Part shown: positions 6,301 through 64,000 of the stretch, in pieces
How the letters are laid out: every line of letters starts with the position of its first letter
Numbering within the stretch: the stretch's first letter is position 1
NCBI RefSeq assembly: GCF_006345805.1
Contig: NC_043003.1
Coordinates: forward strand, 88,846,001 to 88,910,000
DNA: 64,000 bases
Reading direction: 5' to 3'
From: Octopus sinensis
Lineage: Eukaryota
The notes under the pieces: model-generated
The model's input: the letters and a program-made list of their open reading frames with translations, nothing else
The model's database searches: none
What the model was told of the DNA's origin: nothing
Translations under genes and position numbers: made by a program

Positions 6301-6777
6301 TATATAGTAGGTAGTCCCACCTGCGAGCTTGGGTTTGATGAAGCCAGGTCAGCTGCTGTACAATCTTTTGTGCCATGCACAAAAAAGATTGCTGCCCAGC
6401 AGCTGCCCTTTCAACAACATCATGTTGGCGGTTTGTGGCATGCACCACATCTGCGTACCTCCGTTTTGGGGCAGGTGGTGCGTGGTCCATCCCTTTTCCT
6501 TGTGTTGATGGTTTGTTTATCTGTTTCGTGTCTCTGCGGCAGGGTCCCCGATGTGCAAAGCGGCAGCCTGCACCTTCCTTTCCATGCCAGCAGGTACCTC
6601 TCAGGTAGAACCTACACACCCGTGTGCGCTGTTTGTTTCCATCCTTTGCGGTTCCACTTCTATTCCTGGTTGTTTCACCCTTTGGTCCTGCTTGAGCTTT
6701 TCCTTTAGCTCTTTCAGTCCTTCTTTTAGTTCTTCCTCCCTCTACTTCTTCCCTGGGTTCTCCATCTCCACGGCCAT
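3345..6777 (-). mobile_element. CR1-group non-LTR retrotransposon, near full length, degraded (ORF1 plus APE-RT ORF2)
   Basis: APE motifs LLLNIRGL, ALTETHL, GGVAMYIR, LIGDFNLP; RT motifs YRPISLTSH, QHGFRPGRSC, GVPxGTVLGPLL, YADD; frameshifts. Confidence 0.92.
6224..6619 (-). pseudogene. ORF1 remnant of the CR1-group LINE with a CCCH-type zinc finger
   Basis: CRFYLRGTCWHGKEGAGCRFAH immediately upstream of the APE domain. Confidence 0.7.
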
Positions 6778-6790
6778 ATATATATATATA

Positions 6791-17795: not shown

Positions 17796-17920
17796 AAAGA
17801 AGCTGATAGAATAAGTACTAGGCTTACAAAGAATAAATCCTGGGGTTAATTCGTTTGACTTAAGGTGGTGCTGCAGCATGGCCACTGTCAAATGACTGAA
17901 ATAAAAGAATAAAAGAAATT
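17796..17920 (+). mobile_element. SINE 3' half fused directly to truncated RTE copy 2
   Basis: gatagaataagtact...cagcatggccactgtcaaatgactgaaataaaagaataaaag. Confidence 0.8.
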
Positions 17921-19700: not shown

Positions 19701-21837
19701 TTTGTGTACTGTCTCTAGATTCATCTAACTCTCATCCTGATATCCTAGTTACCAGTTTATGTAGACAGATTCTCTTTACATTAGGGAAATATTGAATATT
19801 CACTGGTTTCAGTCCCATTTCCTGGTGAGTATAAAGTCTATTTGACTTACATGTTTGTCTGATTTGTAAGCAGGCAGGTAGCTGACCAGCTTTCAGAAAT
19901 TTGTATTACAGTTGTGTTAGGTCAGTTGCATCACAAAACTCTGGAAGTTTCTTTGATCCCTTCTTCATTCTTTATAGCATACTCATACTTTTATGTACAT
20001 ATGGTTACCTAATCTGATGTTGTCCCCAGATGTGATAACAAGATTGCTGTCATCTATTACACTGGGGAACATTTTTGCAAAAATTTTAAGTGGTCTTGCT
20101 TTTTACAAATAGTCCTACCTAATTTGATGGTGCTGGGCTCAGAAATGCCCTTTGAAATTTTCCATCATGTCAAGTTTTTTGTTAAATAGGCATTCATTTT
20201 TTTACCAAAAAATGTCAATTTTGTCATTAAATGTAATACTGAAATAAGAAACTAACAAATATATTGCACAAAATGTTTAATTACACATCTTAGAATAGAT
20301 GTAAATACACATTTACACCCATGTTGCAGCCCAGTGCTTGAAAACCGGTTAACAGGGTCTGCACAAGATCTTCATAATTTGATGGCTTCTTGTTTCCCAG
20401 GAAATCAAATACAACTGCAGCAAAAGCATTCCTTGCTTCTTTTTCAGTGCCAGATATGGTCTCCAAAAATAGCTCATTCTGCAAATATGTGGCCCATCAA
20501 ATATACCAACCTTAATTTTCTCACAAGACAAAACAGGAAACTTTGTGCTTAAGTATTTGAAGCAGCCACTGTCTCAGTGTTTGAACATGCGTTTTGCACC
20601 CTATATGAGGTGCCCAGGCTTCGTCTTGTCACTTCATGCTAAAGTAAGTAAGGAAGTAAGGCAAGCTTTCTTCACAAAATCTGTAATTTTGTTTCACTGC
20701 CTAATCCAGAAATAAGCAGAAGACACTGGAGCTGCTTTTACATTCTCTTCTCTCACAACTGGCCATATTTCTGAAACACAAAACATATTCAGGCTGGTTA
20801 TCTCTTATGATAAAAGGCAGATTTTCTCTGCCTCCCAAACCGTTCGTTATTTATATAATTCTACAATATAGAATTTCTTCAATTGGAATTTACCTATCAT
20901 TTTTCCAAGTAGATTCCATTGGGTCATGGCATGTAAAGTTTTTTCAATTTCACCCCCAATTAAGCAAAAATTCGAGAAAACTCAATATTTTACGATTTCC
21001 CTCTTTCATTTAAAGTGCTTCACTCCTACCATTACCACTACACTTTCTCCTCCTTTCTCTTTGCAAGTGTGCAACAATTAAAGTGAAAGTATTTATATAA
21101 AAGGGACGAGCAATTAATACTGGTCATCCTTTTTGCTAGAAGAAGATCTGCTATGGTCTTATATGCTACACCACTGGTTTTCAATTCATATTAATCAAAT
21201 TAATATTCAATTTTTCACCTTTATTATGTGTGTGTGTATTAGCAATTCGTATAAAATTGCATCAATGACTTGAACTTCAATAAGTGGTTTCACATAAATG
21301 GGGATACATTAAAAAGGTTTGTTGTTATTATTATTACTGTTTGACTATTGTAATCACGTTTGTTGGTTCCTCGTCAGGGAAACGTTGTTGTGTTGCATTT
21401 GTTAAATAATTGCAAACCGTTACCCTCCTCCTTTCGGAGAAGGGGCTTTGGTTATTGTTTTAAAATTGAATTGTGTCCCTGTTTGGGGAAATTGACAATA
21501 TTTTCACCGTCTTTACGGAAGCATTTTTGTTAAAATGCCTTCGATAGAAGAAAGTCCAGAAATGAATTTCGCTGCAGCCGTACACTTCTATACAAGAGGG
21601 AGGACAAGATCCAATTGATCGAAATTGCAAGAGACAGGCCTACAATTCCAGTCTGTTATATATTTTGAGTATTGTTATCACTAGCGATATTAAGATATAA
21701 CTTTGTATTTTGTATTTTATGTGTAGATGTATATATATATAGATGTACATGTAATATGTACACATATATATATACACATATATACATGCATAATATATCT
21801 ACCTATACACACATACGCACACACACACACACATACA

Positions 21838-24251: not shown

Positions 24252-27200
24252 TATCATGATCATCATCGTTTAATGTCTGCTTTCCATGCTAGCATGGGTT
24301 GGACGATTTTGACTGAGGGCTAGCGAGCCAGATGGCTGCACCATGCTCCAATCTTGATCTGGCAGAGTTTCTACAGCTGGATGCCCTTCATAACACCAAC
24401 CAGTCCGAGAGTGTAGTGGGTGCTTTTTACGTGCCACCGGCACGAGGGCCAGTCAGGCGGTACTGGCAATGATCTCGCTCGAATCCTTTTACACATGCAA
24501 CTGGCACGGGTGCCAGTGAAACGACATTGGTAATGATCACGCTCAAATGGTGCCCTTGTACGTGCCACGGGCTCGGAAGCCAGTCGACTGCTCTGGCAAC
24601 GATCACACTCGGATGGTACTCTTGGCACCCTACTAGCACAGGCATAAGTGCCAGTAAGGTGACGCTGGTAACGATCATACTCGAATAGCCTCTCTGTCAA
24701 CGATCACACTCGTATGGTGCTCTTTGCACCCCGCTAGCACAGATGCCAGTCATTGAATTGATTTTGATTTCACTTGCCTCAACAGGTCTTCGCAAGCAGA
24801 GTTTAGTGACCAAAGAAGGAAAAGGTACGCATAAGCGGGCTGGTTACACTCCTGGCATAGGCCACAGGTTATGGTCTCATTTGGCTTGCCGGGTCTTCTC
24901 AAGCACAGCATATTTCCAAAAGTCTCGGTCGCTAGTCATTTCCTTGGTGAGGCCTAATGTTCGAAGGTCGTGCTTCACCACTTCATCCCAGGTCTTCCTG
25001 GGTCTACCTCTTCCACAGGTTCCCTCAACCGCTAGGGTGTGGCACTTTTTCACACAGGTATCCTCATCCATTCTTGCCACATGACCATACCAGCGCAGTT
25101 GTCTCTCTTGCACACCACATCTAATGCTTCTTAGGTCCAACTTTTCTCTCAAGGTACTTACACTCTGTCGAGTATGCACACTAACATAACACATCCATCG
25201 GATCATACTGGCTTCATTCCTTGCGACCATACGCATGTCCTCAGCAGTCATAGCCCATGTTTCACTGCCATGTAGCATGGCTGTTTGTACACATGCATCA
25301 TACAGTCTACCTTTTACTCTGATTGAGAGGCCCTTTGTCACCAGCAGAGGTAAGAGTTCTCTGAACTTTGCCCAGGCTATTCTTATTCTAGCAGCTACAC
25401 TTTCAGCGCACCCTCCTTTGCTACTGACTTGGTCACCTAGGTAATGGAAGCTATCAACTACTTCTAGTTTTTCTTCCTGGAATGTTGCGTAAGTTGGTCT
25501 CTGCGCATTTCCAGTGTTTATCCCTCCCGAGCATCTGCCACATACAAAAACTATCTTCCCAGTTAGCCTTCCTTTGATATTGCTGCACCTCTTATGTGTC
25601 CATAGCTTACACTGGGTACATCTTATAGAGTTTCTACCTATGCCTCTACTACAGATCGAGCAGGGCCATCTACCTGAAGGGATTTGTGGTTTGCCTGCCT
25701 TCCTACTTATTAGGACTTTGGTTTTAGCTAGGTTGATTTTAAGGCCCTTCGATTCTAAACCTTGTTTTCACACTTGAAACTTCTCCTCTAGTTCTGATAG
25801 TGACTCAGCAATTAGAGCAAGGTCGTCAGCATAGAGGAGCTCCCAGGGGCATCTTGTCTTGAATAAATAGGAGGGGGCTGAGGACTGAACCTTGGTGGAC
25901 CCCTACCTCTACCCTGAATTCTTCAGTGTACTGGTTGCCAACCCTCACCTTACTAGCAGCGTCCCTGTACATGGCTTGCATGGCTCTCACTAACCATTCA
26001 TTTATCCCTAGTTTCCTCATTGACCACCAGATAAGGGATTGGGGGACCCTGTCAAAGGCTTTCTCCATGTCAATGAAAGCGAGGTACAGGGGCTTATCTT
26101 TGCCTAGGTATTTCTCCTGCAGCTGTCTCACCAGAAATATGCACGAACCCAAACTGCATCTCATCCAAGTTGACTCTCTCCCTAATCAGTTGGGCTATGA
26201 CCCTCTCCATAACCTTCATTACCTGATCCAACAGCTTGATACCTCTGTAATTTTTTGTATCTAGGGCGTCACCTTTACCTTTGTAGCAGTTGACTATTAT
26301 GCTGATACACCAGTCGTTGGGTATGACACCTTCGTGTATCATCTGGTTAACTATACAGGTGACTAGGCTATAGCTGACACTACCAGATATTTTGAGCATC
26401 TCTGCAGTAATTCCTGATGGGCCTGGGGCTTTCCCTGTCTTCATGCTTCTAATTGCCTTAACTACCAAGGAACTGTCAACTCGGATAGCTGGTCCCTCAG
26501 TTGGGTTGACATTCGGCAGACTCTCTTTATCCCATTTATTTTCTTTATTCAGCAACCTTTCATAATGGCATCTCCAAACCTCTCTTTTTGCATCCTCATT
26601 TAGCGCAAGTGAACCATCATCCATGCGAACACATTTCTCTCCTACCACATCACGATTCTCTCTCACACACTGTCTTGCAACACGAAATACCTCGAGTCTT
26701 TCATCCTCACGGCTCAGAACATTGGCAAATATTTTCTTATCCGCTTCCCCTCTGGCTAAATATACCTGCCTCCTAGCTTCCATTCTGGCAGTCTGATACA
26801 CTTCCCTGCTACCACCGTTCTTCCAGTCCTTCCAAGCCTGTTCCTTTTGTCTAATAGCCTTGTCAACAACATTGTTCCACCACCATGTTATTTTGGGTTG
26901 AGAGGGGGGTTTGCACCATCCACAGAGCTGGTCGGTGGCACTTAATAGGTTGTCCCGTAGGAACCTCCAGTTGTCTTCTATACCATGTGAAGCTATATCC
27001 CCTTCTATTTCGTCAAAGGCTCCAAGTAATATGTCTCTAAATCTCTGTCCGTTAGCAGGATCTTTAAGTCTCCAGACCTGTCTTCTTCTTGCAGGTCGTC
27101 TTCTGGGCATCCATTTAGCCCTGATCCTGAAGTCACTAACTACCAATCTATGTTGTGGGGTACATTCTTCGCCAGGGAAGGTTTTGGCATTTATAAGCAG

Positions 27201-43780: not shown

Positions 43781-46700
43781 AGGCTACTTTCAAGCCTTCG
43801 CCATAACTTGATTTATCTTTCCTATCTCTCTCTCTACGAAATTTAACCTTAGGCTACCTCAAGCCGTAATCCCATCTTTCCCCATCTTTCCGCCAGCGGC
43901 GGTGCGCCCGCCCCCCCCCCCCCACCCCCACCACCAATACCAATGAACACTGTTCTCACCCCCACCACCAATACCGGTGAACACTGTTCTCACCCCCACC
44001 ACCAATACCGGTGAACACTGTTCTCACCCCCACCACCAATACCAGTATACCCTGTTCTCACCATCTACACCAGATACGCCCTACTCATCTGCACCGGATA
44101 CGCCCTACTCCCTCCTCCTCCCCCCACTACCCCTTCTCCTCATATGCTTTCACTGTGAAAAGACAAGCTGCTAGCGCCATAGCTCATCAACTTACGCTTC
44201 CTCCTGACACTGCCTCAATCCGACCATCCCCTTTTAGTACCCTCCCGCCTCGTAATATCCTACGTTTTTATTTCTTACGAACCTACACCAACCCTTCCTG
44301 CCATCGTTCCCCCTTACCCCAACCTTCCCCACTGGTTGCTCCCCTATATTACCCGCCTCAACTGGACCCCCCCTCCCCAACTCAACTCTAGAATATCTGT
44401 ATTTCTTTCCTCTACCTAATTACGTTACTCAGTGACGATAACGAATGTCCACTGCTAACACCAGCTCCTGCCCACGGCGTGGTCAGGTTGGAAGAGAGAT
44501 CAAAAGAAAAATACCACGAAAACTATCACCACCACAACAACCCTCCTCTTCTCAGGCGCCGAATCCCCCCCCCCCCCCACATCTCCTTCCCAGTTTTCAG
44601 AGTTGGCACTATCAATGTTGGTACATTGACAGGCAAGTCTAGTGAGATTGTAGAGATGCTAGAGAGAAGACAGGTTGATGTATGCTGCATACAAGAGGTA
44701 AGATGGAGAGATGCTTCGGCTAGGGTCCTCACGGGCAAGGCACTTAGGTACAACTCTACTGGCAAGGTAACGCGGAAGGTGTAGGGGGTGTAGGCATTCT
44801 CCTTGCGGAGGAATGGGTGGATAAGGTCATAGAGGTTGTCAGGTTTTGTGATAGTGCTTAAGCTCAGGTTGGTCCTACAGAGTGGCACAGCTATGATTAT
44901 CTCAGCCTATGCCCCACAAGCGGGACTACCAATGATCAGAAGGACAACTTTTATGATACCCTTCTGCAGGCTACTTCAAAGACTAGTAACAAGGACCTCA
45001 TCTTTGTAGGTGGAGATTTTAATGGGCATGTTGGGCGGGAATCGGGTATCTTCACTGGGGTACATGGTGGCTATGGTATTGGCACCAGAAATGATGAGGG
45101 AACTAGACTGCTGGAATTCTGTGATGCATGTAACCTTTCAATCTGCAACACTAACTTCAAGAAGCCAGTCTGCCACCTTATAACTTATCAGTCAGGAGAC
45201 TCCGCTAGCCAAATAGACTTCATCCTCACCAGACAACGGGATGCAGGGTTGCTCTTGAATACAAAGACCCTCCCGGGTGAAGAATGTATCCCTCAGCATA
45301 GACTAATCATCAGTGACTTTAAGCTTGAGGCCAGAAGGACTCCAAGAAACAAACCATCCAGAAAAGAAGGATTTGGAGGCTAAAGAACCCTTCGCATGGT
45401 CAGAAATTTAGGGACATACTCATCAAGAAATTTGATGAGAGGGAGGAGGAGCTTCAGACGTCAGACATAGAAGGTAGCTGGGAATTCCTACGGAACAGCT
45501 TGTTGAGTGCCACAGACCAAGTCTGTGGATGGTGCAAAGTCCCTTCCAGACCTAGAATTACGTGGTGGTGGAATAGTGCAGTAGATAAAGCCATCTGTGA
45601 AAAGAGACGGGCCTGGAAAGCCTGGAAGGATGGGGGCAGCAGGGAACTGTACCAGATTGCCAAAAGGGAGGCTGGGCGGCAGGTATACATTGCCAAAGAT
45701 GTAGCAGAAAAGAAGAAGTTTGCCAATGTCCAGCGTCGCGAGGATCAAAGAGCTGAAGTATTTCGGATTGCCAGACAGTGTGTCAGAGAAAATAGCGATG
45801 TTATAGGAGAGAAATGTGTCCGCATGGATGATGGGGCACTTGCTTTTACTACTAGTGAAAAGAAAGAGGCTTGGAGAAGCCATTATGAAAGACTGCTGAA
45901 TGAGGAGAATGAATGGGAGGAGGAGAGCCTGCCAAATGTTGACCCAGTAGAGGGACCAGCTACCCGAATAGACAGCTACCTTGTAGATAAGGCAATTAAG
46001 GATATGAAACCAGGCAAAGCCCCTGGCCTATCAGGAATCACTGCTGAGATGCTTAAAACAGCTGGCTATGTGGCTATGCCATAGTCACCCGCATTGTAAA
46101 CCAGGTAGTTCACAATGGAGTCATACCAATGACTGGTGCAGCAGCACCATAGTCAACTGCTACAAGGGTAAGGGTGATGCTCTAGATAGAAATAACTACA
46201 GAGGTATCAAACTGTTGGACCAGGTGATGAAGGTCTCAGAGAAGGTCATAACCAATCTCATTAGGGAGAGAATTTGTTTAGATGAAATGCAGTTCGGTTT
46301 TGTACCAGGTAGAAGCACCACTGATGCTATATTCCTGGTCCGACAACTGCAGGAGAAGTACCTAGCTAAAGATAAACCCCTCTACATAGCTTTTGTAGAC
46401 TTGGAGAAAGCCTTTGACAGGGTTCCCCGTTCCCTTATCTGGTGGTCGATGCGGAAACTGGAGATTGAAGAATGGCTAATAAGGGCTGTACAGGCTCTAT
46501 ACAGAGAGGCTGTCAGCAAGGTTAGGATTGGCAACGAATATAGTGAAGAATTCCGGGTAGAAGTAGGTGTGCACCAGGGCTCAGCCCTCAGTCCCCTTTT
46601 ATTCATCATAGTCGTTCAGGCAATAACAGAGGAATTCAAAACGGGATGCCCCTGGGAGCTCCTCTATGCCGATGACCTAGCTCTCATAGCAGAATCACTA

Positions 46701-47974
46701 CCGGAACTAGAAGAGAATTTTCGGTGTGGAAGCAAGGGTTGGAATCAAAGGGCCTTAGAATAAATGTAGCAAAGACCAAAGTATTAGTAAGCAGCAAGAG
46801 GTACTCAGCACACATCCCCTCGGGTAGGTGGCCCTGCTCAACCTGTAGGGAAGGTACAGGTAGAAACTCCATAAGATGCACCCAATGTAAGTTATGGACA
46901 CATAAGGGTGCAGCAACATTAAAGGAAATTAACAGATAAGATAGCTTTCATGTGCGGCAGATGCACAGGGACAATAGACACAACAGACACTCAGAAACAG
47001 ATTCCATCACACTCCAGGGAGAGAAACTAGAAGTAGTTGATAGTTTCCGCTACCTGGGTGACCAAGTTAGTAGCGGAGGTGGATGCACAGAGTATCACCA
47101 CTAGAATACGAATAGCCTGGGCAAAGTTCAGAAAGCTCCTACCCCTACTGGCAACAAAAGGTCTCTCCCTCAGAGCAAAAGGTAGATTGTATGATGCATG
47201 TGTGCGAACTGCCATGCTTCACGGTAATGAAACATGGGCTGTGACTGCAGAAGACATGCGTAGACTTGAAAGAAATGAAGCTAGCATGATCCGCTGGATG
47301 TGTAGTGTCAGTGTGCATGCAAAACAGAGTGTAAGTATCCTGAGAGAAATGCTGGATATAAGAAGCATCAGATGTGGTGTGCAAGAGCGACGCTTGCGAT
47401 GGTATGGTCAGGTGCTGCGGATGGATGAAGAGAGATGTGTGAAGAAGTGCCACTCCCAAACAGTTGAAGGTATCAGGGGGAGAGGTAGACCCAGGAAGAC
47501 ATGGGATGAGGTGGTCAAGCATGACCTCAGAGCATTGGACCTCACTGAGGCAATGGCGAAGGACCGAGATCTCTGGAGATATGCTGTGACTACAAAGACC
47601 CGGGCTGCTTTCTGCAGCAATTCCACATACACCCTACCCATTCTAAGTACCCCGGATCCCCAAAGTACACTGGATCCCCAAAGTACCCCGATCCCCAAAG
47701 TACCCCGGACCTCGTTGCCCCCGTGCCGCTGACACGTTAAAATGCTCGAACCGATCGTGACGATGCCGGACCCTCCGGCCCCTGTGCAGGTGGCACGTAA
47801 AAAGCACCCAATCCACTCACGGAGTGGTTGGCGTTAGGAAGGGCATCCAGCCGTAGAAACTCTGCCAGATTCAGACTGGAGCCTGGAGCGGCCCCTGGCT
47901 TCCCAGACCCGGTCGAACCGTCCAACCCGTGCTAGCGCGGAAAGCGGACGTTAAACGATGATGATGATGATGAT
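43781..47974 (+). mobile_element. RTE LINE copy 4, full length, frameshifted, present only in the left arm
   Basis: 5' leader with 4 x 34-bp repeat (43928-44062), APE, RT and (GAT)n tail; absent from the mirrored TA tract at about 52330-52385. Confidence 0.93.
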
Positions 47975-48256
47975 ATATGTGTACACATACTTACACATAT
48001 GTACATATACATACACACATACATAACTCTACGTACCTACATATACCTAAACACACGAGCGTACACGTATATGTACATATACACATACACATACACACGC
48101 ATATATACATACATACACATACATACACGCACATATACACATATATACATATATATATATATACATATATATACACATATATATATATATATATACATAT
48201 ACACACATACACACATATATACATACATATACATACACACACATACACATACACAC

Positions 48257-48296
<40 letters not shown>

Positions 48297-48461
48297 ACAT
48301 ATATATACATATACACATACATACATACACATACATATACATATACACACATACACACACACACATACACACACACACATACATATATACACACCCACAC
48401 ACATACATATACATACACACATACATACACACATATATATACACACACATACATATATACA

Positions 48462-48524
<63 letters not shown>

Positions 48525-48597
48525 CATGTGTGCAAACATACATACATACTCATACACACTCACACACTTACATATACATATATACACACACTTACAC

Positions 48598-48629
<32 letters not shown>

Positions 48630-48799
48630 ACATACATACATATAAATATATATATATATATTACATATATATACACACATATCTATACACACATACACAT
48701 ATTTACACATACACACACATATTCACATATAATATATATAATATATATATATATATATATTATACACATACCACACATATAATATATATACATATATAC

Positions 48800-48837
<38 letters not shown>

Positions 48838-49028
48838 TATATATACATACACATATATATATACCCACACCTACACATACACACATATATATATACATAT
48901 ATACATACATATACACACATACACACACACACACATATATATGTGTACATACATACACATACATATACATATACACATGCACATACGTATAACTCTACAT
49001 ACCCACATATACATATATATATATACAC

Positions 49029-49059
<31 letters not shown>

Positions 49060-49563
49060 TATATATACATATATATACACGTACATATACACACACATAT
49101 ATATACCCATCTACAATCTGTATATACACACACATACATGCACATACACATAACTCTACATACCTACATATACATCGACATACTCGCGTACACTCATATA
49201 TATATGAGTGTATATATGAGTGTACGCGAGTATGTCGATGTATATGTAGGTATGTAGAGTTATGTGTATGTGCATGTATGTGTGTGTATATACAGATTGT
49301 AGATGGGTATATATATGTGTGTGTATATGTACGTGTATATGTATGTATATATATGTGTGTGTATATGTGTATATATATATATGTATATGTGGGTATGTAG
49401 AGTTATACGTATGTGCATGTGTATATGTATATGTATATGTATATGTATGTGTATGTATGTACACATATATATGTGTGTGTGTGTGTATGTGTGTATATGT
49501 ATGCATATATGTATATATATATGTGTGTATGTATAGGTGGGGGGTATATATAGTATGTGTTTG

Positions 49564-49602
<39 letters not shown>

Positions 49603-49628
49603 GTATATATGTATATACATATATATAT

Positions 49629-49697
<69 letters not shown>

Positions 49698-49751
49698 AAT
49701 ATGTGTGTGTATGTGTAAATATGTGTATGTGTGTATAGATATGTGTGTATA

Positions 49752-49782
<31 letters not shown>

Positions 49783-50080
49783 GTATGTATGATAGTATAT
49801 ATATATATATATATGTGTGTGTGTAAGTGTGTGTATATACGTATATGTAAGTGTGTGAGTGTGTATGAGTATGTATGTATGTTTGCACACATGTATATGT
49901 ATATATATGTATATATATATATGTGTATATATGTATGTGTGTGTATATATATGTGTGTATGTATGTGTGTATGTATATGTATGTGTGTGGGTGTGTATAT
50001 ATGTATGTGTGTGTGTGTATGTGTGTATATGTATATGTATGTGTATGTATGTATGTGTATATGTATATATATGTATATGC

Positions 50081-50120
<40 letters not shown>

Positions 50121-50303
50121 AAATAATAAATATTAGGGAATAAATCCAAAATTTACAGGGAAAAGAAATCAGATTTAGGATTAAATCCAATTTTATAGTA
50201 AAATATTATAAAATATTATTAGAGACAAAACCACTATTTTGCAAAACAAACAAGGAAAGACTTAATCAATACATAAAATTTTAATAAATAGTCAAAAAAA
50301 CCG

Positions 50304-50346
50304 CCACTACAATCGTTTCTTGTCTTGATCGACAATCTTCAGGTGG
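50304..50346 (-). ncRNA. Minimal type I hammerhead ribozyme motif, canonical copy
   Basis: Minus strand ccac-CTGAAGA-ttgtc-gatcaa-gacaa-GAAAC-gatt-GTA-gtgg. Confidence 0.8.
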
Positions 50347-50988
50347 ACTTCCAATCAAATACTGTAATATTGAACATGCTTCTATGGTAACCAGTACTGC
50401 AAATAATGCTCATGTTGTCTTCAGCTAAACTGACATTGGTTATACTCAATGTGCAGATTTTCTCTTGGCAACTAGTTTCTTGATGGCTACCAAAATATTT
50501 AGGAAAATTTTCGTTATTTACTCCACTGTATTTAGCAATAATTGTTCCATTTCCAGTAAACCAAAATCTTGTACCACCACTAACATTGCATTTCAATGTG
50601 AATTTTTTATCCTTTATGGCATTTGGTGTTTCATAACTTGGGTTAAGATTCCCATTGTCATTGAATAATGGTCTTGCATAAAATCTTGTCTTCTCACCAG
50701 AGGTGCTTTCACAAACAATTGTTTGCCCAATATTTTGAAGAAGTGTGATGTTTATGATTCTGACATTGTTAGGAAGCACATTTGCTTCAAAGTTTTCAGT
50801 TTTAGCAGTTCCGCTAATGATGTTCCATCAATTTGCCAGTGTTGGAGGTTTTGCTTTTCAAAAGGACATTCAAAAGTGACTGATTGATTCGCCCTGGGAA
50901 ATTTTGTACCACCCTCAATTATTCCAAGAGAAACACAGAAGCATTGTGCAAGGAACAAGTATTTCAAATATAACGGGTTAAATTCCAT
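50339..50988 (-). pseudogene. Mirror copy of the Ig ORF with a 1-bp deletion frameshift (possible sequencing error)
   Basis: ggaac versus ggaaac (50823-50824 versus 51420-51422); otherwise the same translation. Confidence 0.75.
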
Positions 50989-51255
50989 TATATGCAGGTG
51001 AAGCTTCACATGGGGCTACTTGCTTGGTAAAATCTTCTCCTCCATTAATCAACCTTTTTCTCCGTTAATTAAATTTTAAAACAAAAAACTTTTTCCGTTG
51101 AATTTTTCCAGCGTCTTCCAAAATGGAAGACGCTGGAAAAATTCAACGGAAAAAGTTTTTTGTTTTAAAATTTAATTAACGGAGAAAAAGGTTGATTAAT
51201 GGAGGAGAAGATTTTACCAAGCAAGTAGCCCCATGTGAAGCTTCACCTGCATATA

Positions 51256-51906
51256 ATGGAATTTAACCCGTTATATTTGAAATACTTGTTCCTTGCACAA
51301 TGCTTCTGTGTTTCTCTTGGAATAATTGAGGGTGGTACAAAATTTCCCAGGGCGAATCAATCAGTCACTTTTGAATGTCCTTTTGAAAAGCAAAACCTCC
51401 AACACTGGCAAATTGATGGAAACATCATTAGCGGAACTGCTAAAACTGAAAACTTTGAAGCAAATGTGCTTCCTAACAATGTCAGAATCATAAACATCAC
51501 ACTTCTTCAAAATATTGGGCAAACAATTGTTTGTGAAAGCACCTCTGGTGAGAAGACAAGATTTTATGCAAGACCATTATTCAATGACAATGGGAATCTT
51601 AACCCAAGTTATGAAACACCAAATGCCATAAAGGATAAAAAATTCACATTGAAATGCAATGTTAGTGGTGGTACAAGATTTTGGTTTACTGGAAATGGAA
51701 CAATTATTGCTAAATACAGTGGAGTAAATAACGAAAATTTTCCTAAATATTTTGGTAGCCATCAAGAAACTAGTTGCCAAGAGAAAATCTGCACATTGAG
51801 TATAACCAATGTCAGTTTAGCTGAAGACAACATGAGCATTATTTGCAGTACTGGTTACCATAGAAGCATGTTCAATATTACAGTATTTGATTGGAAGTCC
51901 ACCTGA
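51256..51906 (+). CDS. Intronless secreted-type protein: signal peptide plus two Ig-like domains, 216 aa
   Basis: ATG in context ataATGg (the track's 51235 start is GTG); hydrophobic leader; C-x9-W-x41-C and C-x8-W-x53-C with LSITNVSLAED..IIC; 7 N-x-S/T sequons. Confidence 0.7.
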   Translation: MEFNPLYLKYLFLAQCFCVSLGIIEGGTKFPRANQSVTFECPFEKQNLQHWQIDGNIISGTAKTENFEANVLPNNVRIINITLLQNIGQTIVCESTSGEKTRFYARPLFNDNGNLNPSYETPNAIKDKKFTLKCNVSGGTRFWFTGNGTIIAKYSGVNNENFPKYFGSHQETSCQEKICTLSITNVSLAEDNMSIICSTGYHRSMFNITVFDWKST

Positions 51907-51942
51907 AGATTGTCGATCAAGACAATGAAACGATTGTAGTGG
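51899..51942 (+). ncRNA. Minimal type I hammerhead ribozyme motif overlapping the Ig ORF stop codon (extra U before GAAA)
   Basis: ccac-CTGAAGA-ttgtc-gatcaa-gacaa-t-GAAAC-gatt-GTA-gtgg. Confidence 0.72.
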
Positions 51943-52320
51943 CGGTTTTTTTGACTATTTATTAAAATTTTATGTATTGATTAAGTCTTTCCTTGTTTGT
52001 TTTGCAAAATAGTGGTTTTGTCTCTAATAATATTTTATATATATGTATATATATATATATGTGTGTATGTGTATGTGTGTGTATGTATATGTATGTATAT
52101 ATGTGTGTATGTGTGTATATGTATATATATATATATATATGTGTGTATCTATATGTATATATATATATATATGTATATATGTGTATATGTGCGTGTATAT
52201 ATGTATGTATATATGCGTGTGTATGTGTATATGTACATATACGTGTACGCTCGTGTGTTTAGGTATATGTAGGTACGTAGTTATGTATGTGTGTATGTAT
52301 ATGTACATATGTGTATGTGT

Positions 52321-52385
<65 letters not shown>

Positions 52386-56645: not shown

Positions 56646-59083
56646 CCGATCTTGGATCTGGTATTGACCAAAAACTCTAGCTACATTCACAGTATTTCAG
56701 TTGAAAAAACTCTCCTCTCAGACCACGACATGGTACTCTGCAATTTTAATTCCCGACATATAAAAACCAAACCAGTCAATCCCACTCCATGGCACCCATT
56801 TGACAACATAAACTTCCACAAAGCGGACTGGGGAGCAATCAGAAAGGATCTGTCTTCCATTGACTGGTCTTTTACTCTCAATTCCTCTCATATTGAGACC
56901 GCGTGGCAGCACTTTGAAAACATTGTCACCTATACATGCTCTAAACACGCTCCCACGAAATCTACTAACACAAACAGAAACCGGCTCCCTAAAAAGAAAG
57001 AAACACTCATCAGGCGCATCAAAAGACTCAACAAAAAAAATCAACCAATTAAAATATTCCCACACACAACATCCACATTCAACAACAATGAAAAGACTAG
57101 AGCTGGAAAAACTTCATCTGCAGACCAACATGAAAACCTCCATTGAAAATCAAAGAGCTGTGAAGGAACAGTGGGTAATCAAAAACATCAAACAGAACCC
57201 AAAAGTGTTCTATTCTTATGCAAATAAGCATAGAACCACTGTCTCACCCATTGGGCCATTGATTGGTGATAATGGCATTCCCCAACACGATGCTAAAGAA
57301 ATGGCAGAAATACTGCAGAAACAATACTGCTCTGTCTTTAGTGTTCCCACTGATATTGACGTAAGAGAAACGAACAAAGTTGACTCCCAACATAAAACCT
57401 CAGACATAACCTTCACTGCCACTGACATCGTAGCAGCAATAAATGAGGTCAAATATTACTCTGCTGTAGGCCCTGATAGATTCCCCGCTAGTCTCCTGAA
57501 GGAATGTAGACTCCAACTTGCAGTCCCTCTGACCAACCTATGGAGAAATTCGTTAGACGCAGGTTATATCCTGAAACAGTTTCTATCCCAGTCGGTCATC
57601 CCAGTTTTCAAACAGGGAAACAGATCCCTCGCAGTCAACTATCGCCCAATCTCACTCACCTCCCACATCATTAAAGTGTTTAAAAGAGTGTTAAGATCAA
57701 GGATAGCTGACTTCCTGGAGACCCACAAACTCCTAAATGCAAATCAGCATGGCTTTCGCTGTGGCAGGGACTGTCTAACACAGCTCATACACCACATTGA
57801 AGATGTACTCAAAGCCTTGGGAACAGGTTCGAATCTGACGTCATATATCTTGACTTCAGTAAAGCGTTTGACAGAGTAGACCATAATATCCTACTCTCAA
57901 AATTGGCAAATGTTGGAATCTGTGGAAAAGTTCTACACTGTATTAAGTATTTCCTGGCGAATAGAACATAACATGTTGTAGTTGATGGAGTCCACTCAAG
58001 CCCAGCAAAAGTCACCAGCGGTGTTCCCCAGGGGACTGTTTTGGGTCTGCTATTCTTCATAATTTACATAAACGACCTTTCCAGTGTCGTACATTACTGC
58101 AAAGTGAAAATATTTGCTGATGACACTAGGCTCCAGCAAATCGTCAATGAAGAAGCAGACCGAACTCAACTCCAGTCTGATCTATATGCTGTGAGTCAAT
58201 GGGCAGACAGAAACAAAATGCAACTGAATGAGGGAAAATTTGAGCTGATGCATTTTGGAAGAAAATCCTCACTAAAACAACCATACTCTCTTCCTTCAGG
58301 GGAACCGCTCACAGTCTCTAACAATATCAGAGACCTCGGTGTAATTGTTGATGACAATCTCAGTTGGAGTGCACACATCAACAAGAAGGTCGATATAGCT
58401 CGTAGGATGAGTTCCTGGATCTTAAGAACTTTCCGGTCTAGAGAACAAGGTGTCATCATACCACTTTTCTCCTCCTTTGTATGGCCACACCTTGAATACT
58501 GCTGCCCACTGTGGTCTCCCCATACAAGACAAAACATCTCCAAGATTGAGTCACCCCAGAGGGCACTCACTAAACAAATTGAAGGCATGGCTGCTCTCGA
58601 TTATTGGGATCGCCTTAAAGCCTTGAAACTTTACTCCCTCAGTGTCGCCGTGAGCGGTACATCATTTGTACGATGTGGAGAATATACCGCCAACTTTGCC
58701 CAAACGACCTTAACATTAGCTTCAAGGTTCATCCAAGACTGGGACCACGGGCCATACGTCCCCTGCCCAATTCAAGATCACAACATACATGTACACTGCA
58801 ACATAATTTCTTTTCCTCAACAGGCCCTGCCCTATTTAACATTGTCCCGAGGGAGATCAAAGAGGAAAAGGATCCCATCAACTTTAAACGGAGTCTGGAT
58901 AGATTCCTTCAAAGAATACCAAATAAGCCACCCATAATTGGATACAACTCACCCAACAAGAACTCACTACTTGAACAAAACTTGACTTAAACAGGATTCG
59001 AATAATCCTATCAGGTGGTGCTATTAAGTTAGACATGGCCTGGACCAATCTTTGGTCGAAACATATCTAAGTTATCTAAGTTA
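56646..59083 (+). mobile_element. CR1-group LINE (third family), 5'-truncated, with a (TATCTAAGT)n-like tail
   Basis: YRPISLTSH, QHGFRCGRDC, GVPQGTVLG, FADD, HLEYCCPLWSP; frameshifts. Confidence 0.9.
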
Positions 59084-60544: not shown

Positions 60545-63500
60545 GCACCCACCCTCTCCACCCTCCCACCCTCCCACCCCCTCCACACATGCTGGAAGTT
60601 CCTATTCTTTGCCATCCCAGGGTTTGCTTCCCATGAAGACTGCAAATGCTCTTTCACCATCCCTACCCCTAGTCTCAACCTATGTAAGGTAATGTTCATA
60701 CAGTGCAAAATATGAAAGGCTAGTGTATGCAGGTTGTACTGAAGGCTACTTTGCTACTTCATTACTTGCAGATGAATTCTGCCAAATGCGAGCTTTCTTT
60801 TCAGGTACACGAAGCTACTGTCCACCATCCCAGGGTCTCTAGAGCCCATGCCTCCCACACCCTCAGGGTTGGCACCCTCGACGTTGGCACACTGAAAGGT
60901 AGGTCTGGTGAGATAGTCGAGATGCTTGAACGGAGATGTGTGGATATATATTGCATGCAAGAAATAAGGTGGAGAGGAGGATCAGCTAGGTTCCTCACAG
61001 GCAAGGAACGCAGGTACAAGATTTTCTGGGCAGGGAACACTGACGGGGTTGGTGGCGTGGGTATACTTATCGCTGAGAAATGGGTAGATAAAGTAATTGA
61101 GGTAATCAGAGTATGTGACAGAATACTTAAGATTAGATTAGTGCTTCATCATAGTTTAGCAACCATTATATCAGCCTATGCTCCTCAGTCGGGGCTACCC
61201 GATGGACAGAAAGACCGATTCTATGACACTCTACTGCAGACTACCTCGTTGACGAACGACAGAGACCTTATCTTTGTGGCTAGTGACTTCAATGGTCACG
61301 TTGGATGACATGCTGGGGGCTTCCATGGCGTACATGGAGGCTATGGCTATGGCTCCCGCAATGAGGAGGGAACCAGGCTGCTGGAGTTCTGCGATGCAAA
61401 TAATCTTATGATTTGCAACACTAACTTCAGGAAACCTACCAGCCACCTAGTCACTTACCGATCGGGCCAACATACCAGCCAAATTGACTACATCCTTGCA
61501 AGGAAAAGGGAGAGATGGCTGCTTATGAATGCCAAAACCTTCCCAGGTGAAGAATGCACCCCACAACATAGACTGGTGGTTAGCGACTTTAGGATCAGGA
61601 CTAGGAGGACAACCAGAAGACGACCAATATGGAGAAGAAGGATCTGGAAGCTTAAAGATCCTGCAAATGGACAGAGATTTAGGGACATATTACTTGAAGC
61701 CTTTGACGAAGTAGAAGGGGATAGAGCATCACAGGGGGTAGAAGACAACTGGACGTTTCTAAGGGACAACCTGCTGAGAGCCACTGACCAGATCTGTGGC
61801 TTGTGCAAAGTCCCCTCTCGACCTAGAATAACGTGGTGGTGGAACAATATTGTAGACAGGGCTATTAAAGAAAAGAGACAGGCTTGGAAGGCCTGGAAAA
61901 ATGGGGGTAGCAGGGAATTGTATCAGACTGCCAAAAGAGAAGCTAGGAGACAGGTTTATTTAGCCAGAGGGGAAGCAGATAAGAAAAAATTTGCCAATGT
62001 TCTGCGCCGTGAGGACCAAAGACTGGAGGTGTTTCGCGTTGCAAGACAGTGTGTGAGAGAAAATCGTGATGTGGTAGGAGAGAAGTATGTTCGCATGGAA
62101 GATAGTTCACTTGCGCTAAATGAGGATGCAAAGAGAGAGGTTTGGAGATGCCACTATGAAAGGTTGCTGAATAAAGAAAATGAATGGGATAAAGAGAGTC
62201 TGCCGAATGTTGACCCAACAGAGGGACCAGCTATCCAAGTTGATAGTTCCGTGGTAGCTAAGCCAATTAGAAGCATGAAGACAGGGAAAGCCCCAGGCCC
62301 ATCAGGAATCACTGCAGAGATGCTCAAAATGTCTGGTAGTGTCGGCTATAGCCTAGTCACCCGTATAGTTAATCAGGTGATACACAAAGAAGTCATACCC
62401 AATGACTGGTGTAGCAGCATAATAGTCAACTGCTACAAAGGTAAAGGTGACGCCCTAGATACAAATAACTACAGAGGTATCAAGCTGTTGGATCAGGTGA
62501 TGAAGGTTACGAAGAGGGTCATAGCCCAACTAATTAAAGAGAGAGTTAGTTTAGATGAGATGCAGTTTGGGTTTGTGCCAGGGAAAAGTACTACTGATGC
62601 TATATTCCTGGTAAGGCAGCTGCAGGAGAAATACCTAGCCAAAGATAAGCCCCTGTACCTGGCTTTCGTTGACATGGAGAAAGCCTTCGACAGGGTCCCC
62701 CGATCCCTTATCTGGTGGTCAATGAGGAAACTAGGGATAGATGAATGGTTAGTGAGAGCTGTGCAGGCCATGTATAGGGACGCTGCTAGTAAGGTGAGGG
62801 TTGGCAATGAGTACAGTGAAGAATTCAGGGTAGAGGTAGGGGTCCACCAAGGCTCAGTCCTCAGCCCCCTCCTATTTATCATAGTCCTCCAGGCAATAAC
62901 GGAGGAATTCAAGACAGGATGCCCTTGGGAGCTCCTGTATGCTGATGACCTTGCTCTAATTGCTGAGTCGCTATCAGGACTGGAGGAGAAGTTTCAGGTG
63001 TGGAAACAAGGATTAGAATCGAAGGGCCTCAGAGTCAATCTAGCTAAAACCAAAGTCGTAATCAGTAGGAAGGTAGACAAATCACAAACGCTTTCAGGTA
63101 GATGGCCCTGCTCGATCTGTAGAAAAGGTGTAGGTAGAAACTCTATAAGATGCACCAAGTATAAGCTATGGACACATAAGAGGTGCAGCAATGTCAAAGG
63201 AAGGCTAACTAGGAAGATGGTTTTTGTATGTGGCAGATGCTCAGGAACAATAAACACTGAAAATGCTATGAGACCAACTTCCGTCACTTTTCAGGGAGAA
63301 AAACTAGAAGTAGTTGATAACTTCCGTTATCTAGGTGACCAAGCCAGTAGTGGGGGTGGGTGCACTGAAAGCGTAACTGCTAGAGTAAGAATAGCCTGGG
63401 CAAAGTTTAGGAAGCTCTTACCTCTGCTGGTGACTAAAGGCCTCTCGCTCAGAGTAAAAGGCAGACTGTATGATGCATGTGTACGAACAGCCATGCTACA

Positions 63501-64000
63501 TGGCAGTGAAACATGGGCCGTGACTGCTGAGGACATGCGTAAGCTCGTGAGGAATGAAGCCAGTATGCTCCGATGGATGTGTAATGTCAGTGTACATACT
63601 CGACAGAGCATTAGTACCTTGAGAGAAATGTTGTACCTAAGAAGCATCAGTTGTGGTGTGCAAGAGAGACGATTGCGCTGGTATGGTCATGTGGCGAGAA
63701 TGGATGAAGATAGGTGTGTGAGAAAGCGCCTATCCCTAGCAGTTGAGGGAGCCCGTGGAAGAGGTAGACCCAGGAAAACCTGGGATGAGGTGGTGAAGCA
63801 CGACCTTCGAACTTTAGGCCTCACTGAGGAAATGACCAGCGACCGAGACCTCTGGAAATATGCTGTACGTGAGAAGACCAGGCAGGACAAGTGAGCCCAG
63901 CCCATTTATGAATGCCTTTCCTCCCTTGGACACAAAGACCTGTTGAGGCAAGCGAAGTCGATATAGAACCTCATCCGACGTCAGGCACCCCTTTGCTTGC
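60545..64000 (+). mobile_element. RTE LINE copy 5, near intact (3' UTR runs off the window)
   Basis: APE-RT reading frame; closely related to copy 3. Confidence 0.95.
60727..63894 (+). pseudogene. RTE APE-RT polyprotein (about 1055 codons) with one in-frame stop
   Basis: Track ORFs 60727-61308 and 61408-63894 are in the same frame; a single TGA at 61306-61308 interrupts GHVG*HAGG. Confidence 0.92.

Follow-up and report, generated by a model that had tools for sequence, protein, structure and literature searches.

Within the window, the whole 64,000-nucleotide stretch of Octopus sinensis DNA analyzed here, a 1915-bp palindromic insert (50121–52035) lies in a TA/TG microsatellite and joins exons of a host immunoglobulin superfamily (IgSF) gene, stripped of their introns, to a 3′ module of the type seen in Penelope-like elements (PLEs). 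We consider it probable that the insert is a very young chimeric host/PLE retrocopy, made from an mRNA that arose by exon trapping and was retroposed in trans by a PLE enzyme.

Architecture of the palindromic insert and its target site

Alignment of the two arms of the insert, together with inspection of its flanks and of the older palindrome that surrounds it, resolves the following parts:

50207–51120, minus strand: left arm, a complete chimeric unit with a canonical hammerhead and an ORF broken by a 1-nt deletion near 50824
51121–51123: apex loop AAA, separating the 5′ ends of both arms
51124 to ~52035, plus strand: right arm, matching the reverse complement of the left arm and starting with the same base
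50121–50206, minus strand: 86-nt tail, present on the left arm only, a long alternative 3′ end with the terminus ...CCCTAATATTTATTATTT
51890–52035, plus strand: PLE-type 3′ module of the right arm, with the short alternative 3′ end ...GTCTCTAATAATATTT
50108–50120: left copy of the target-site duplication (TSD), TATATATATGTAT
52036–52048: right copy of the TSD, TATATATATGTAT
48253–48281: empty-site counterpart on the mirrored side of the older outer palindrome, a single (TA)n-TG-(TA)n site with no insert

The arms, which lie head-to-head and measure 913 and 915 bp, differ by zero substitutions and just two 1-nt indels: an extra A in the right arm at ~51420 (GGAAAC versus GGAAC in the left arm) and an extra T in the right arm at 51926 (ACAATGAAAC versus ACAAGAAAC). 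This combination fits either independent cDNA syntheses or a very recent event. The three nucleotides at the apex are probably non-templated or derived from template switching. The TSD is 13 bp long and brackets the entire palindrome. Neither arm carries a poly(A) 3′ tail, the arm ends instead reading ...AATATTT and ...TTATTATTT; no direct repeat of the module, as expected of a partially tandem pseudo-LTR (pLTR), is found inside the insert or adjoining it; and tandem hammerhead units are absent, there being one hammerhead per arm, on opposite strands.

The insert sits within one side of an older inverted duplication with 1.2-kb arms and an axis at ~49206 (47973–49206 versus 49207–52330 minus the insert). 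Positions 49113–50118 are 88% identical to the reverse complement of 49300–48253, and positions 52036–52330 are 91% identical to the reverse complement of 48281–47973; because other registers of the microsatellite reach only ~70–75% identity, the outer duplication is real and goes beyond mere low complexity. A preliminary description of this DNA had proposed a 1915-bp palindrome with a 3-nt loop at 51121–51123 and an 86-bp terminus on the left only, flanked on both sides by a site that occurs once, free of insert, in the mirrored arm (48266–48279). The arm alignment and the outer duplication bear out both proposals.

Exon-derived cargo

The plus-strand arm can be divided, from its 5′ end to the start of the 3′ module, into segments that correspond to successive exons of octopus IgSF genes:

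51124–51252, plus strand: segment derived from 5′UTR exon(s); homology to the O. bimaculoides gene begins only at the next exon
51253–51309, plus strand: signal-peptide exon segment, 81% identical to L003 4039–4095, which is bounded by ag/ and /gtaagt
51310–51583, plus strand: Ig1 exon segment, corresponding to the L003 exon at ~20893–21176, which is bounded by cag/ and /gtaagt
51584–51889, plus strand: Ig2 exon segment of 306 nt; all genomic counterparts are bounded by ttag/ and by /gtaagt or /gtatgt
51256–51906, plus strand: intact ORF of 216 aa, running from an ATG at 51256 to a TGA stop and comprising a signal peptide, two Ig-like domains and then DWKST

In the O. bimaculoides locus L003, the signal-peptide, Ig1 and Ig2 exons (4039–4095, ~20893–21176 and 24903–25214) are 17 kb and 3.7 kb apart, whereas in the window they are contiguous and collinear; in L003 an AG acceptor also stands before the signal-peptide exon. 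Four genomic paralogues align at the DNA level over precisely the 306 nt of the Ig2 exon, from ...ttag/ up to /gtaagt, with identities of 93.5% (L004 10652–10957), 93.1% (L002), 90.5% (L001) and 86.5% (L003). The closest Ig2 match found is O. sinensis LOC115212246 (93.5% at the nucleotide level), and the closest match found over the signal peptide and Ig1 is the protein of O. sinensis LOC118761327 (P0009; 85% amino-acid identity). Across the paralogues, the Ig2 exon seems to carry more non-synonymous change than expected. The loss of at least three introns, exactly at exon boundaries, indicates an RNA-mediated origin. On the strength of these alignments, the ORF is a processed copy of exons from a multi-exon Octopus IgSF family, covering the 5′UTR, signal peptide, Ig1 and Ig2. 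A viral source for the ORF can be set aside because its homologues are multi-exon octopus genes.

Each arm had been thought to hold both an intronless two-Ig ORF and a hammerhead. Closer comparison qualifies this picture: the ORF is intact in the right arm only, its left-arm copy being frameshifted near 50824, and the hammerhead is canonical in the left arm only. The stop codon of the ORF is the UGA of the hammerhead CUGA box. Judged by its predicted translation, the right arm may still give rise to a secreted protein with two Ig domains; the insert brought no promoter with it.

We provisionally assign the ORF to the Ig superfamily because its paralogues are IgSF proteins. Pfam recognizes no Ig domain in the translated ORF, and an AlphaFold2 model of it reaches a pLDDT of 34 (from a 4-sequence alignment, too poor for a fold search), with domain 2 all-beta. 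Among the paralogues, Ig_3, I-set and C2-set_2 score above cut-offs in downstream domains, and Ig_3/V-set stretches extend over the Ig2-equivalent domain of P0006 (127–195) and P0004 (194–267), each as a weak match below cut-off; P0006 bears the UniProt name 'Ig-like domain-containing protein'. A PDB profile search with the family alignment returned nothing meaningful, and one with P0003 alone gave weak matches to CEACAM5, neurotrimin and DSCAM by way of downstream domains.

The hammerhead-like motif and its 3′ module

Immediately beyond the Ig2 segment lies the module that contains the ribozyme-like motif. Its copies, in the insert and in the comparison loci, are as follows:

50304–50346, minus strand: canonical minimal type-I hammerhead motif, CCAC-CUGAAGA-UUGUC(GAUCAA)GACAA-GAAA-C(GAUU)G-UA/GUGG
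51899–51942, plus strand: hammerhead copy of the right arm, with a 1-nt U inserted at 51926, before G12, so that the core fails
L001 19784–20215: family-A copy with the same hammerhead core and tail body; its inverted 134-nt arm ends at the short end
L002 ~15913–16116: family-A copy with the short 3′ end, in (TA)n; a single arm without inverted partner
L001 45239–45880: second hammerhead family (family B), with the same head-to-head layout

The left-arm motif has every core position (C3 U4 G5 A6 N7 G8 A9, G12 A13 A14, A15.1-U16.1 and H17), with helices I, II and III of 4, 5 and 2 bp, respectively. The helix III/loop 3 sequence, ACGAUUGU, is quasi-palindromic and self-complementary with G.U pairs, giving a self-duplex of -5.8 kcal/mol. 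A hammerhead descriptor matched twice in 341 kb of octopus DNA, versus 0.1 matches expected in shuffles. By this sequence pattern, the insert carries a minimal type-I hammerhead-like motif. No Rfam hammerhead (RF00163, RF00008, RF02275-7) was found at the gathering threshold across the whole window, nor at E<=10 on 2.6 kb, on 81 nt or on the family-B motif. Minimum free-energy folding of the region favors an alternative hairpin, an outcome that is usual for hammerheads and is uninformative. Separately, the many miRNA-like Rfam matches in the window merely reflect the palindrome apex and the microsatellite.

The module begins exactly at the Ig2 exon end with ATTGGAAGTCCACC, 9 nt upstream of hammerhead helix I. 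Introns of O. sinensis contain further copies of the motif and a ~200-nt tail; these lie in (TA)n and show both of the alternative 3′ ends, and the architecture of the insert is repeated at two or three other octopus loci. In a family-A comparison comprising three copies only, the short 3′ end is common to all of them (the window right arm, the inverted arm of L001, and L002), and the L001 copy has a homologous extra tail of ~80 nt on one side only (20136–20215). A search of the paralogous contig L002 for a syntenic empty site of the L001 copy found none, the flanks being high-copy repeats. A metagenome scan with a conserved 19-mer from the tail returned 14 contigs, all of them chance matches of 19–27 nt.

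The preliminary description had also raised the prospect of finding this terminus downstream of a PLE ORF elsewhere. No RT/GIY-YIG ORF joined to the hammerhead and tail is present in the window or in loci L001–L004 (341 kb of octopus DNA). A single PLE endonuclease remnant was seen in these sequences, at L001 20650–21710; its 3′ end is unrelated, and a protein search for a PLE partner with this GIY-YIG remnant gave no match. No second Ig-carrying copy is known, and there is no evidence for a multicopy element over a one-off chimeric retrocopy.

Origin of the insert and relation to known elements

PLEs insert as inverted copies placed head-to-head, bear a tail at one end only, favor (TA)n or AT-rich targets and contain hammerheads within their pLTRs (PMC8557442). 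A purified PLE enzyme cuts and extends both strands and initiates reverse transcription from two neighboring internal positions, which mark the limits of the tail (PMC11167929). In the rotifer Adineta vaga, pLTRs suffice for trans-mobilization of host genes (PMC3846280), and in Penelope of Drosophila virilis hammerhead helix I has an intron acceptor at its 5′ end (PMC4209133). The insert displays the corresponding features of PLE insertion, namely an inverted copy adjoining the 5′ end, a one-sided tail, and an AT-rich/(TA)n target with a TSD. Its ORF is IgSF only, with no RT/GIY-YIG, and the insert is therefore at most a non-autonomous or trans-mobilized unit. The earlier proposal of a non-autonomous PLE that captured a host or viral Ig mRNA and was mobilized in trans thus stands in part: the RNA origin, the host cargo, the PLE architecture and the hammerhead-like motif support it; a viral cargo is rejected, no PLE ORF joined to the terminus occurs in 341 kb of octopus DNA, and Rfam does not recognize the hammerhead.

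The sequence of events that we favor begins with a multi-exon Octopus IgSF transcript which, as its exon joins indicate, was spliced normally through the 5′UTR, signal-peptide, Ig1 and Ig2 exons. The Ig2 donor would then have been joined, by exon trapping, to an acceptor just 5′ of the hammerhead of a non-autonomous PLE 3′ module, which probably lay in a downstream intron, by analogy with human SVA exon trapping. The resulting chimeric mRNA, bearing the PLE cis-acting 3′ end (the hammerhead plus ~110–200 nt with two alternative reverse-transcription start sites), could have served as a trans template for a PLE RT/GIY-YIG enzyme. The architecture suggests that a (TA)n-TG-(TA)n site was cut with a stagger of ~13 nt and cDNA primed from both strands: the start of one cDNA at the long site yielded the 86-nt tail, the second cDNA began at the short site, and both reached the RNA 5′ end. 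Joining of the two cDNA ends with 3 extra nucleotides would give a full-length head-to-head palindrome and a 13-bp TSD. As the sequence now stands, each arm has a single 1-nt indel of its own, which disrupts the ORF in the left arm and the hammerhead in the right arm.

A LINE could have supplied the machinery instead, with the module exploiting an APE-type LINE in the manner of a SINE and the inversion arising by twin priming or template switching. Copies of APE+RT LINEs are abundant in the window and in the comparison loci, including an intact 828-aa RT ORF (61408–63894), a PLE partner was not found in 341 kb of octopus DNA, and LINE twin priming is known to produce inversions. However, twin priming normally leads to a 5′-truncated inversion, whereas both arms here reach the same RNA 5′ end; the tail is common to no LINE copy in the 341 kb; and the arm ends have neither poly(A) nor a LINE-type 3′ microsatellite. 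Moreover, the insert unites the features of the published PLE signature: two alternative 3′ ends, full-length arms set head-to-head, a tail on one side and a hammerhead. We regard mobilization by a LINE as unlikely.

Enclosure of the whole palindrome, not of a single arm, by the TSD argues against a history in which a single-copy retrocopy came first and was duplicated in inverted orientation later, through rearrangement of the DNA itself within the unstable TA/TG microsatellite, for example by replication template switching or hairpin repair. Although the older outer palindrome marks the locus as prone to fold-back rearrangement, the shorter arm ends at the short 3′ end of the family (as in L001 and L002) rather than randomly, the apex is the processed RNA 5′ end in both arms, and the layout recurs at other loci, all of which make this order of events improbable. 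It is quite improbable, too, that the palindrome is an assembly or sequencing artefact, in which only one arm exists and its mirror image stems from a missed adapter or from a chimeric long read that folded back on itself. The arms are near-identical, one of their differences is a homopolymer length (AAA versus AA) of the type made by long-read errors, and PLE inverted structures are known to trouble assemblies (PMC8557442); yet the flanks are not mirrored and are contiguous with each other in the mirrored empty site, the 86-nt tail, present on the left only, makes the arms asymmetric, the second indel falls outside a homopolymer, and similar structures occur elsewhere in O. sinensis GCA_006345805.1. 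Finally, whole-length inverted arms, TA-rich target sites and a TSD would also fit a DNA transposon of the foldback or TIR type that by chance has a retrogene inside its very long inverted repeats, but we give this reading almost no weight because the ends are asymmetric (one short, one long), the L002 copy is a single arm without inverted partner, no transposase is present, and the content is a spliced mRNA with its 5′ end at the apex.

Returning to the chimeric host/PLE retrocopy, the locus is a variant of a known process, as PLE-mediated host-gene copying has already been described in rotifers (PMC3846280), and the hint in the preliminary description that an Ig-carrying PLE might be unprecedented overstated the case. 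If the PLE attribution holds, the insert is an unusually clean natural record of Penelope-like integration, in which two full-length arms abut at the RNA 5′ end, the two alternative start sites are used by one arm each, and both the TSD and an internal empty site are kept. Its layout would then be the one predicted in vivo from the two-strand cleavage and extension and the dual reverse-transcription start of the Anolis PLE in vitro, and would suggest that a short 3′ module is enough to mobilize a foreign mRNA. On the same premise, PLE host-gene copying would extend from rotifers, where it is intron-retaining and takes place between pLTRs, to cephalopods, by a different route, in which exon trapping acts on a spliced mRNA. 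In annotating PLE-rich invertebrate genomes, an intronless gene copy would then not have to be a LINE product, and a palindromic gene pair within a TA microsatellite would not have to be an assembly error. There is only a slim chance that the Ig unit is a founding or active member of a family of PLE-mobilized IgSF cassettes, with octopus PLEs repeatedly trapping and dispersing N-terminal fast-evolving Ig exons; this would add to the expansion and diversification of a recognition-receptor family, yield secreted decoy forms, and show naturally, in vivo, that a hammerhead-plus-tail module of ~235 nt is enough for symmetric two-strand TPRT of any spliced mRNA.

Comparison with canonical EN+ PLEs (Penelope/Poseidon, Neptune and Nematis) reveals a shared head-to-head inverted copy with an optional tail at one end, a terminal minimal type-I hammerhead, an AT-rich/(TA)n target and a TSD of variable length (PMC8557442, PMC11167929, PMC4209133). 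The tail is 80–86 nt in the octopus copies, as opposed to the 30–40 nt published for PLEs (PMC8557442, PMC11167929), and the hammerhead of the insert has neither the G10.1-C11.1 pair nor the 9/10.1 bulge that minimal hammerheads of PLEs are reported typically to have (PMC4209133). Unlike these elements, the insert has no RT/GIY-YIG ORF and no direct pLTR, and both of its arms are full length, whereas the inverted copy of canonical EN+ PLEs is usually 5′-truncated.

In human SVA (for example MAST2-SVA/SVA_F1) and LINE-1 chimeric retrogenes, a host exon is spliced to a retroelement acceptor and the product is retroposed in trans. The proposed origin of the insert resembles human SVA exon trapping in that an upstream host exon would have been joined to an acceptor inside a non-autonomous retroelement before trans retroposition, but the SVA/LINE-1 chimeras involve L1 ORF2p, poly(A) and simple TPRT and have no hammerhead, two-ended palindrome or tail. 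Metazoan non-LTR retrozymes, which are hammerhead-bearing, non-autonomous relatives of PLE pLTRs thought to be PLE-mobilized (PMC7229834; bioRxiv 10.64898/2026.07.22.740005), are short AT-rich non-coding type-I hammerhead units, and the short family-A copies of L001 and L002 resemble dispersed monomers. Retrozymes, however, form tandem arrays of 170–400-nt hammerhead units that are processed to circRNAs, whereas the insert has one hammerhead per arm, no tandem repeat and a coding cargo. As in the host-gene copying by PLEs of A. vaga, a member of a host multigene family has been copied elsewhere, together with PLE-type terminal sequences and a TSD (PMC3846280). The rotifer cargo keeps all of its introns and lies between two direct pLTRs plus one inverted pLTR (PMC3846280); that of the octopus is fully spliced, stops after the second Ig exon and is fused at a splice junction to a 3′ module alone, in a unit that is palindromic as a whole.

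A palindromic insertion in a duplicated microsatellite

Self-comparison of the sequence reveals a near-perfect palindrome at 50121-52035 of the window, in which the left arm (51120-50208, minus strand), once reverse-complemented, matches the right arm (51124-52035/38, plus strand) around an AAA apex (51121-51123); 86 additional bases are present on the left arm only (50121-50206). The arms show no substitutions and two single-base indels, each an extra base in the right arm (A at about 51420, T at 51926), bearing out a palindromic insert with a one-sided left terminus. An Rfam E-value scan returned miRNA-precursor-like matches at the apex (51067-51177; MIR7504, mir-616 and others) and mir-297/466-like matches in the microsatellite, all below gathering thresholds and explained by the perfect hairpin and the TG/TA repeats.

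The 13-mer TATATATATGTAT directly abuts the insert on both sides (50108-50120 and 52036-52048), and the TA/TG microsatellite around it is in turn an inverted duplication of older date, with its axis at about 49206:

47973-49206 against 49207-50120 plus 52036-52330: older TA/TG palindrome whose arms are about 1.2 kb long and 88-91% identical

Within it, 49113-50118 and 49300-48253 pair at 88%, as do 52036-52330 and 48281-47973 at 91%, against a baseline of only about 70-75% for off-register microsatellite matches. This pairing confirms the earlier reading of a flanking repeat with a single uninterrupted site in the mirrored duplication: the mirrored arm carries the (TA)n-TG-(TA)n site once and unbroken, and the filled arm has the TG interruption and TA flanks on each side of the insert. 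The empty site, together with the duplicated TG site, indicates that the 1915 bp are a genuine insertion with a target-site duplication of 13-14 bp. The older palindrome is immediately preceded by a LINE 3' end carrying a (GAT)n tail (47960-47975). LINE copies with APE and RT lie in the window at 60700-63894, 16591-17814, 5033-8181, 15266-15988 and 46068-47975; in the first, an 828-aa RT ORF is intact (61408-63894) and the upstream endonuclease region is broken by a stop.

Spliced origin of the Ig-like cargo

The preliminary description placed a two-Ig ORF in each arm. The right-arm ORF (51256-51906) is intact, encoding 216 aa that comprise a signal peptide, two Ig-like domains (Ig1 and Ig2) and five residues from the 3' module, but its left-arm counterpart is frameshifted. 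A word-indexed search matched the ORF to O. sinensis LOC118761523, LOC115230044 and LOC115212246 and to O. bimaculoides LOC128247864, and an exhaustive HMMER search yielded 16 relatives of 107-1299 aa; every relative with a named source (five of the six HMMER relatives looked up, plus the four word-indexed matches) is from Octopus. Among the HMMER relatives is O. sinensis LOC118761327, whose signal peptide is the same as that of the window ORF and which is 85% identical to it across signal peptide and Ig1. Full-length paralogues are clearly multi-domain IgSF proteins, with Ig_3, I-set and C2-set_2 exceeding Pfam cut-offs in downstream domains and the Ig2-equivalent domain covered by Ig_3/V-set stretches that are each weak taken singly. 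The window ORF itself has no Pfam Ig match and its AlphaFold model is too poor for use, so that the label "Ig-like" rests on family membership.

In the O. bimaculoides comparison locus, the corresponding exons are separate:

4039-4095: signal-peptide exon
about 20893-21176: Ig1 exon
24903-25214: Ig2 exon

These exons, 17 kb and 3.7 kb apart, are contiguous in the window. Four genomic paralogues match the window DNA (93.5, 93.1, 90.5 and 86.5%) across exactly the 306-nt Ig2 exon, the similarity opening one base past ...ttttag and closing one base before gtaagt or gtatgt. The joining of separated exons, with similarity bounded by splice sites, demonstrates an RNA intermediate. Because an acceptor also precedes the signal-peptide exon in O. 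bimaculoides, window 51124-51252 is derived from at least one 5'UTR exon lying further upstream. Of the host or viral mRNA originally envisaged, the cargo is a host mRNA with its introns removed at splice boundaries, not a viral gene.

Among octopus paralogues, the Ig2 exon (51584-51889, compared with 10652-10957 of locus L004 and 56767-57072 of locus L002) shows a strong non-synonymous excess, with 18-21 non-synonymous against 0.2-2.5 synonymous differences (a crude dN/dS of at least 2, from small numbers and no codon model). This pattern suggests diversifying selection in the octopus IgSF family.

The hammerhead module and its family

Directly after the final Ig2 exon base (51889) comes ATTGGAAGT, followed by the motif CCAC-CUGAAGA-UUGUC(GAUCAA)GACAA-GAAA-C(GAUU)G-UA|GUGG, whose CUGA box supplies the UGA stop of the ORF. 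In the left arm all conserved hammerhead core positions are satisfied, with helices I, II and III of 4, 5 and 2 bp; the right-arm copy is interrupted by an extra U before G12, and the hammerhead claimed for each arm is therefore complete only on the left. The helix III segment ACGAUUGU is self-complementary, a trait of dimer-acting metazoan and Penelope-like element (PLE) hammerheads (PMC4209133). A purpose-written descriptor finds two such motifs in the 341 kb of octopus DNA scanned, where shuffled sequence gives 0.1; Rfam hammerhead models gave no match at any threshold tried, and the G10.1-C11.1 pair typical of minimal PLE hammerheads is absent from the octopus motif. The element is a hammerhead by motif rather than by curated model, and a putative ribozyme.

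The hammerhead and tail (51890-52035 in the right arm) define a repeat family, family A, with further copies in the comparison loci L001 and L002; L001 also holds a second hammerhead family:

L001 19784-20215: family-A copy, in an intron of LOC115230044
L002 about 15913-16116: family-A copy, ending at the short 3' end, then (TA)n
L001 45239-45880: second family, head-to-head arms as in the window insert, more diverged

The first copy has the window core (CCACCUGAUGA...GAAACGAUUGUAGUG) with a longer, unrelated helix II, a body of about 110 nt as in the window, a tail of about 80 nt homologous to the 86-nt tail, and an inverted 134-nt arm (96%) ending where the window's shorter arm ends. The short end common to the window, L001 and L002 copies, together with the long tails, indicates two alternative 3' ends in family A. 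A similar YCYCTAAT plus AT-rich motif lies before each of these ends (CTCTAATAATATTT / CCCTAATATTTATT; window 50121-50135 and 52020-52035, L001 20115-20135 and 20195-20215); it may be a recognition or annealing site for the two RT starts and may be a reason for (TA)n target bias. In the second family (GCAC-CUGAAGA-AUAUGU...ACAUAU-GAAA-CUAUUAG-UU-GUGC), a polypyrimidine tract with an AG precedes helix I by 3 nt, and there is a possible one-sided extension of about 70 nt.

Two other repeats lie nearby in L001. An approximately 340-bp palindromic MITE-like repeat (20241-20582, 88% self-complementary; L004 has related copies) immediately adjoins the family-A element, and a 5'-truncated PLE remnant (20650-21710) with a GIY-YIG motif (NVIYCISCSLCPSLYIGQTGR) and an in-frame stop sits between TA microsatellites, its 3' end unrelated to family A.

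Insertion mechanism and comparison with Penelope-like elements

A fragment of spliced IgSF mRNA has been joined to the module at an exon end, and the fusion was inserted with a target-site duplication. One IgSF paralogue carries a sense-oriented family-A copy in an intron, and the Ig2 donor would have been spliced to an acceptor just 5' of the hammerhead in such a copy. A PLE RT/EN acting in trans then probably primed synthesis from each strand at a staggered cut, with one cDNA starting from the long site and the other from the short; each would have reached the RNA 5' end before their ends were linked through three extra bases. This two-strand model accounts for the equal 5' ends of the arms, their unequal yet family-specific 3' ends, the target-site duplication around the entire palindrome, and one private indel per arm with no substitutions.

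A close variant, in which a single cDNA snaps back on itself, is a poorer fit to the family-specific short end. Four further explanations each account less well for a tail on one side only, a short end common to several copies and the layout's reappearance elsewhere: LINE-mediated retroposition is unlikely, and a later inverted duplication at the DNA level is distinctly more so. An assembly artefact is marginally less probable again, and the assembled left and right flanks, which are not mirror images, count against a simple fold-back read. A foldback DNA transposon is highly improbable.

No promoter was carried along with the insert, and a read-through transcript would form a long hairpin. 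The insert is best regarded as a very young retrocopy that is probably neutral; a secreted truncated IgSF protein from the right arm is possible but unsupported.

PLE hallmarks in the literature are an inverted copy adjoining the 5' end, a one-sided tail, terminal-repeat hammerheads and a (TA)n or AT-rich target bias (PMC8557442). The proposal of a non-autonomous PLE agrees with four published architectural features, but the window element lacks the direct partial tandem repeat (pseudo-LTR, pLTR) and an RT/EN ORF (none in cis, none found in trans in 341 kb of octopus DNA), and it has a tail roughly double the usual length. An Anolis PLE assayed in vitro cuts both DNA strands and extends each of them, with reverse transcription initiated from two neighbouring internal sites that bound the tail (PMC11167929); in D. 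virilis Penelope, an intron has its acceptor at the 5' end of hammerhead helix I (PMC4209133). The novelty first proposed for an Ig-cargo PLE narrows: within the literature searched, no cephalopod case is described of spliced, exon-trapped cargo inserted as a full-length palindrome, but host-gene retroposition by PLE machinery is already known, and in A. vaga pLTRs are enough to mobilise host genes in trans (PMC3846280).
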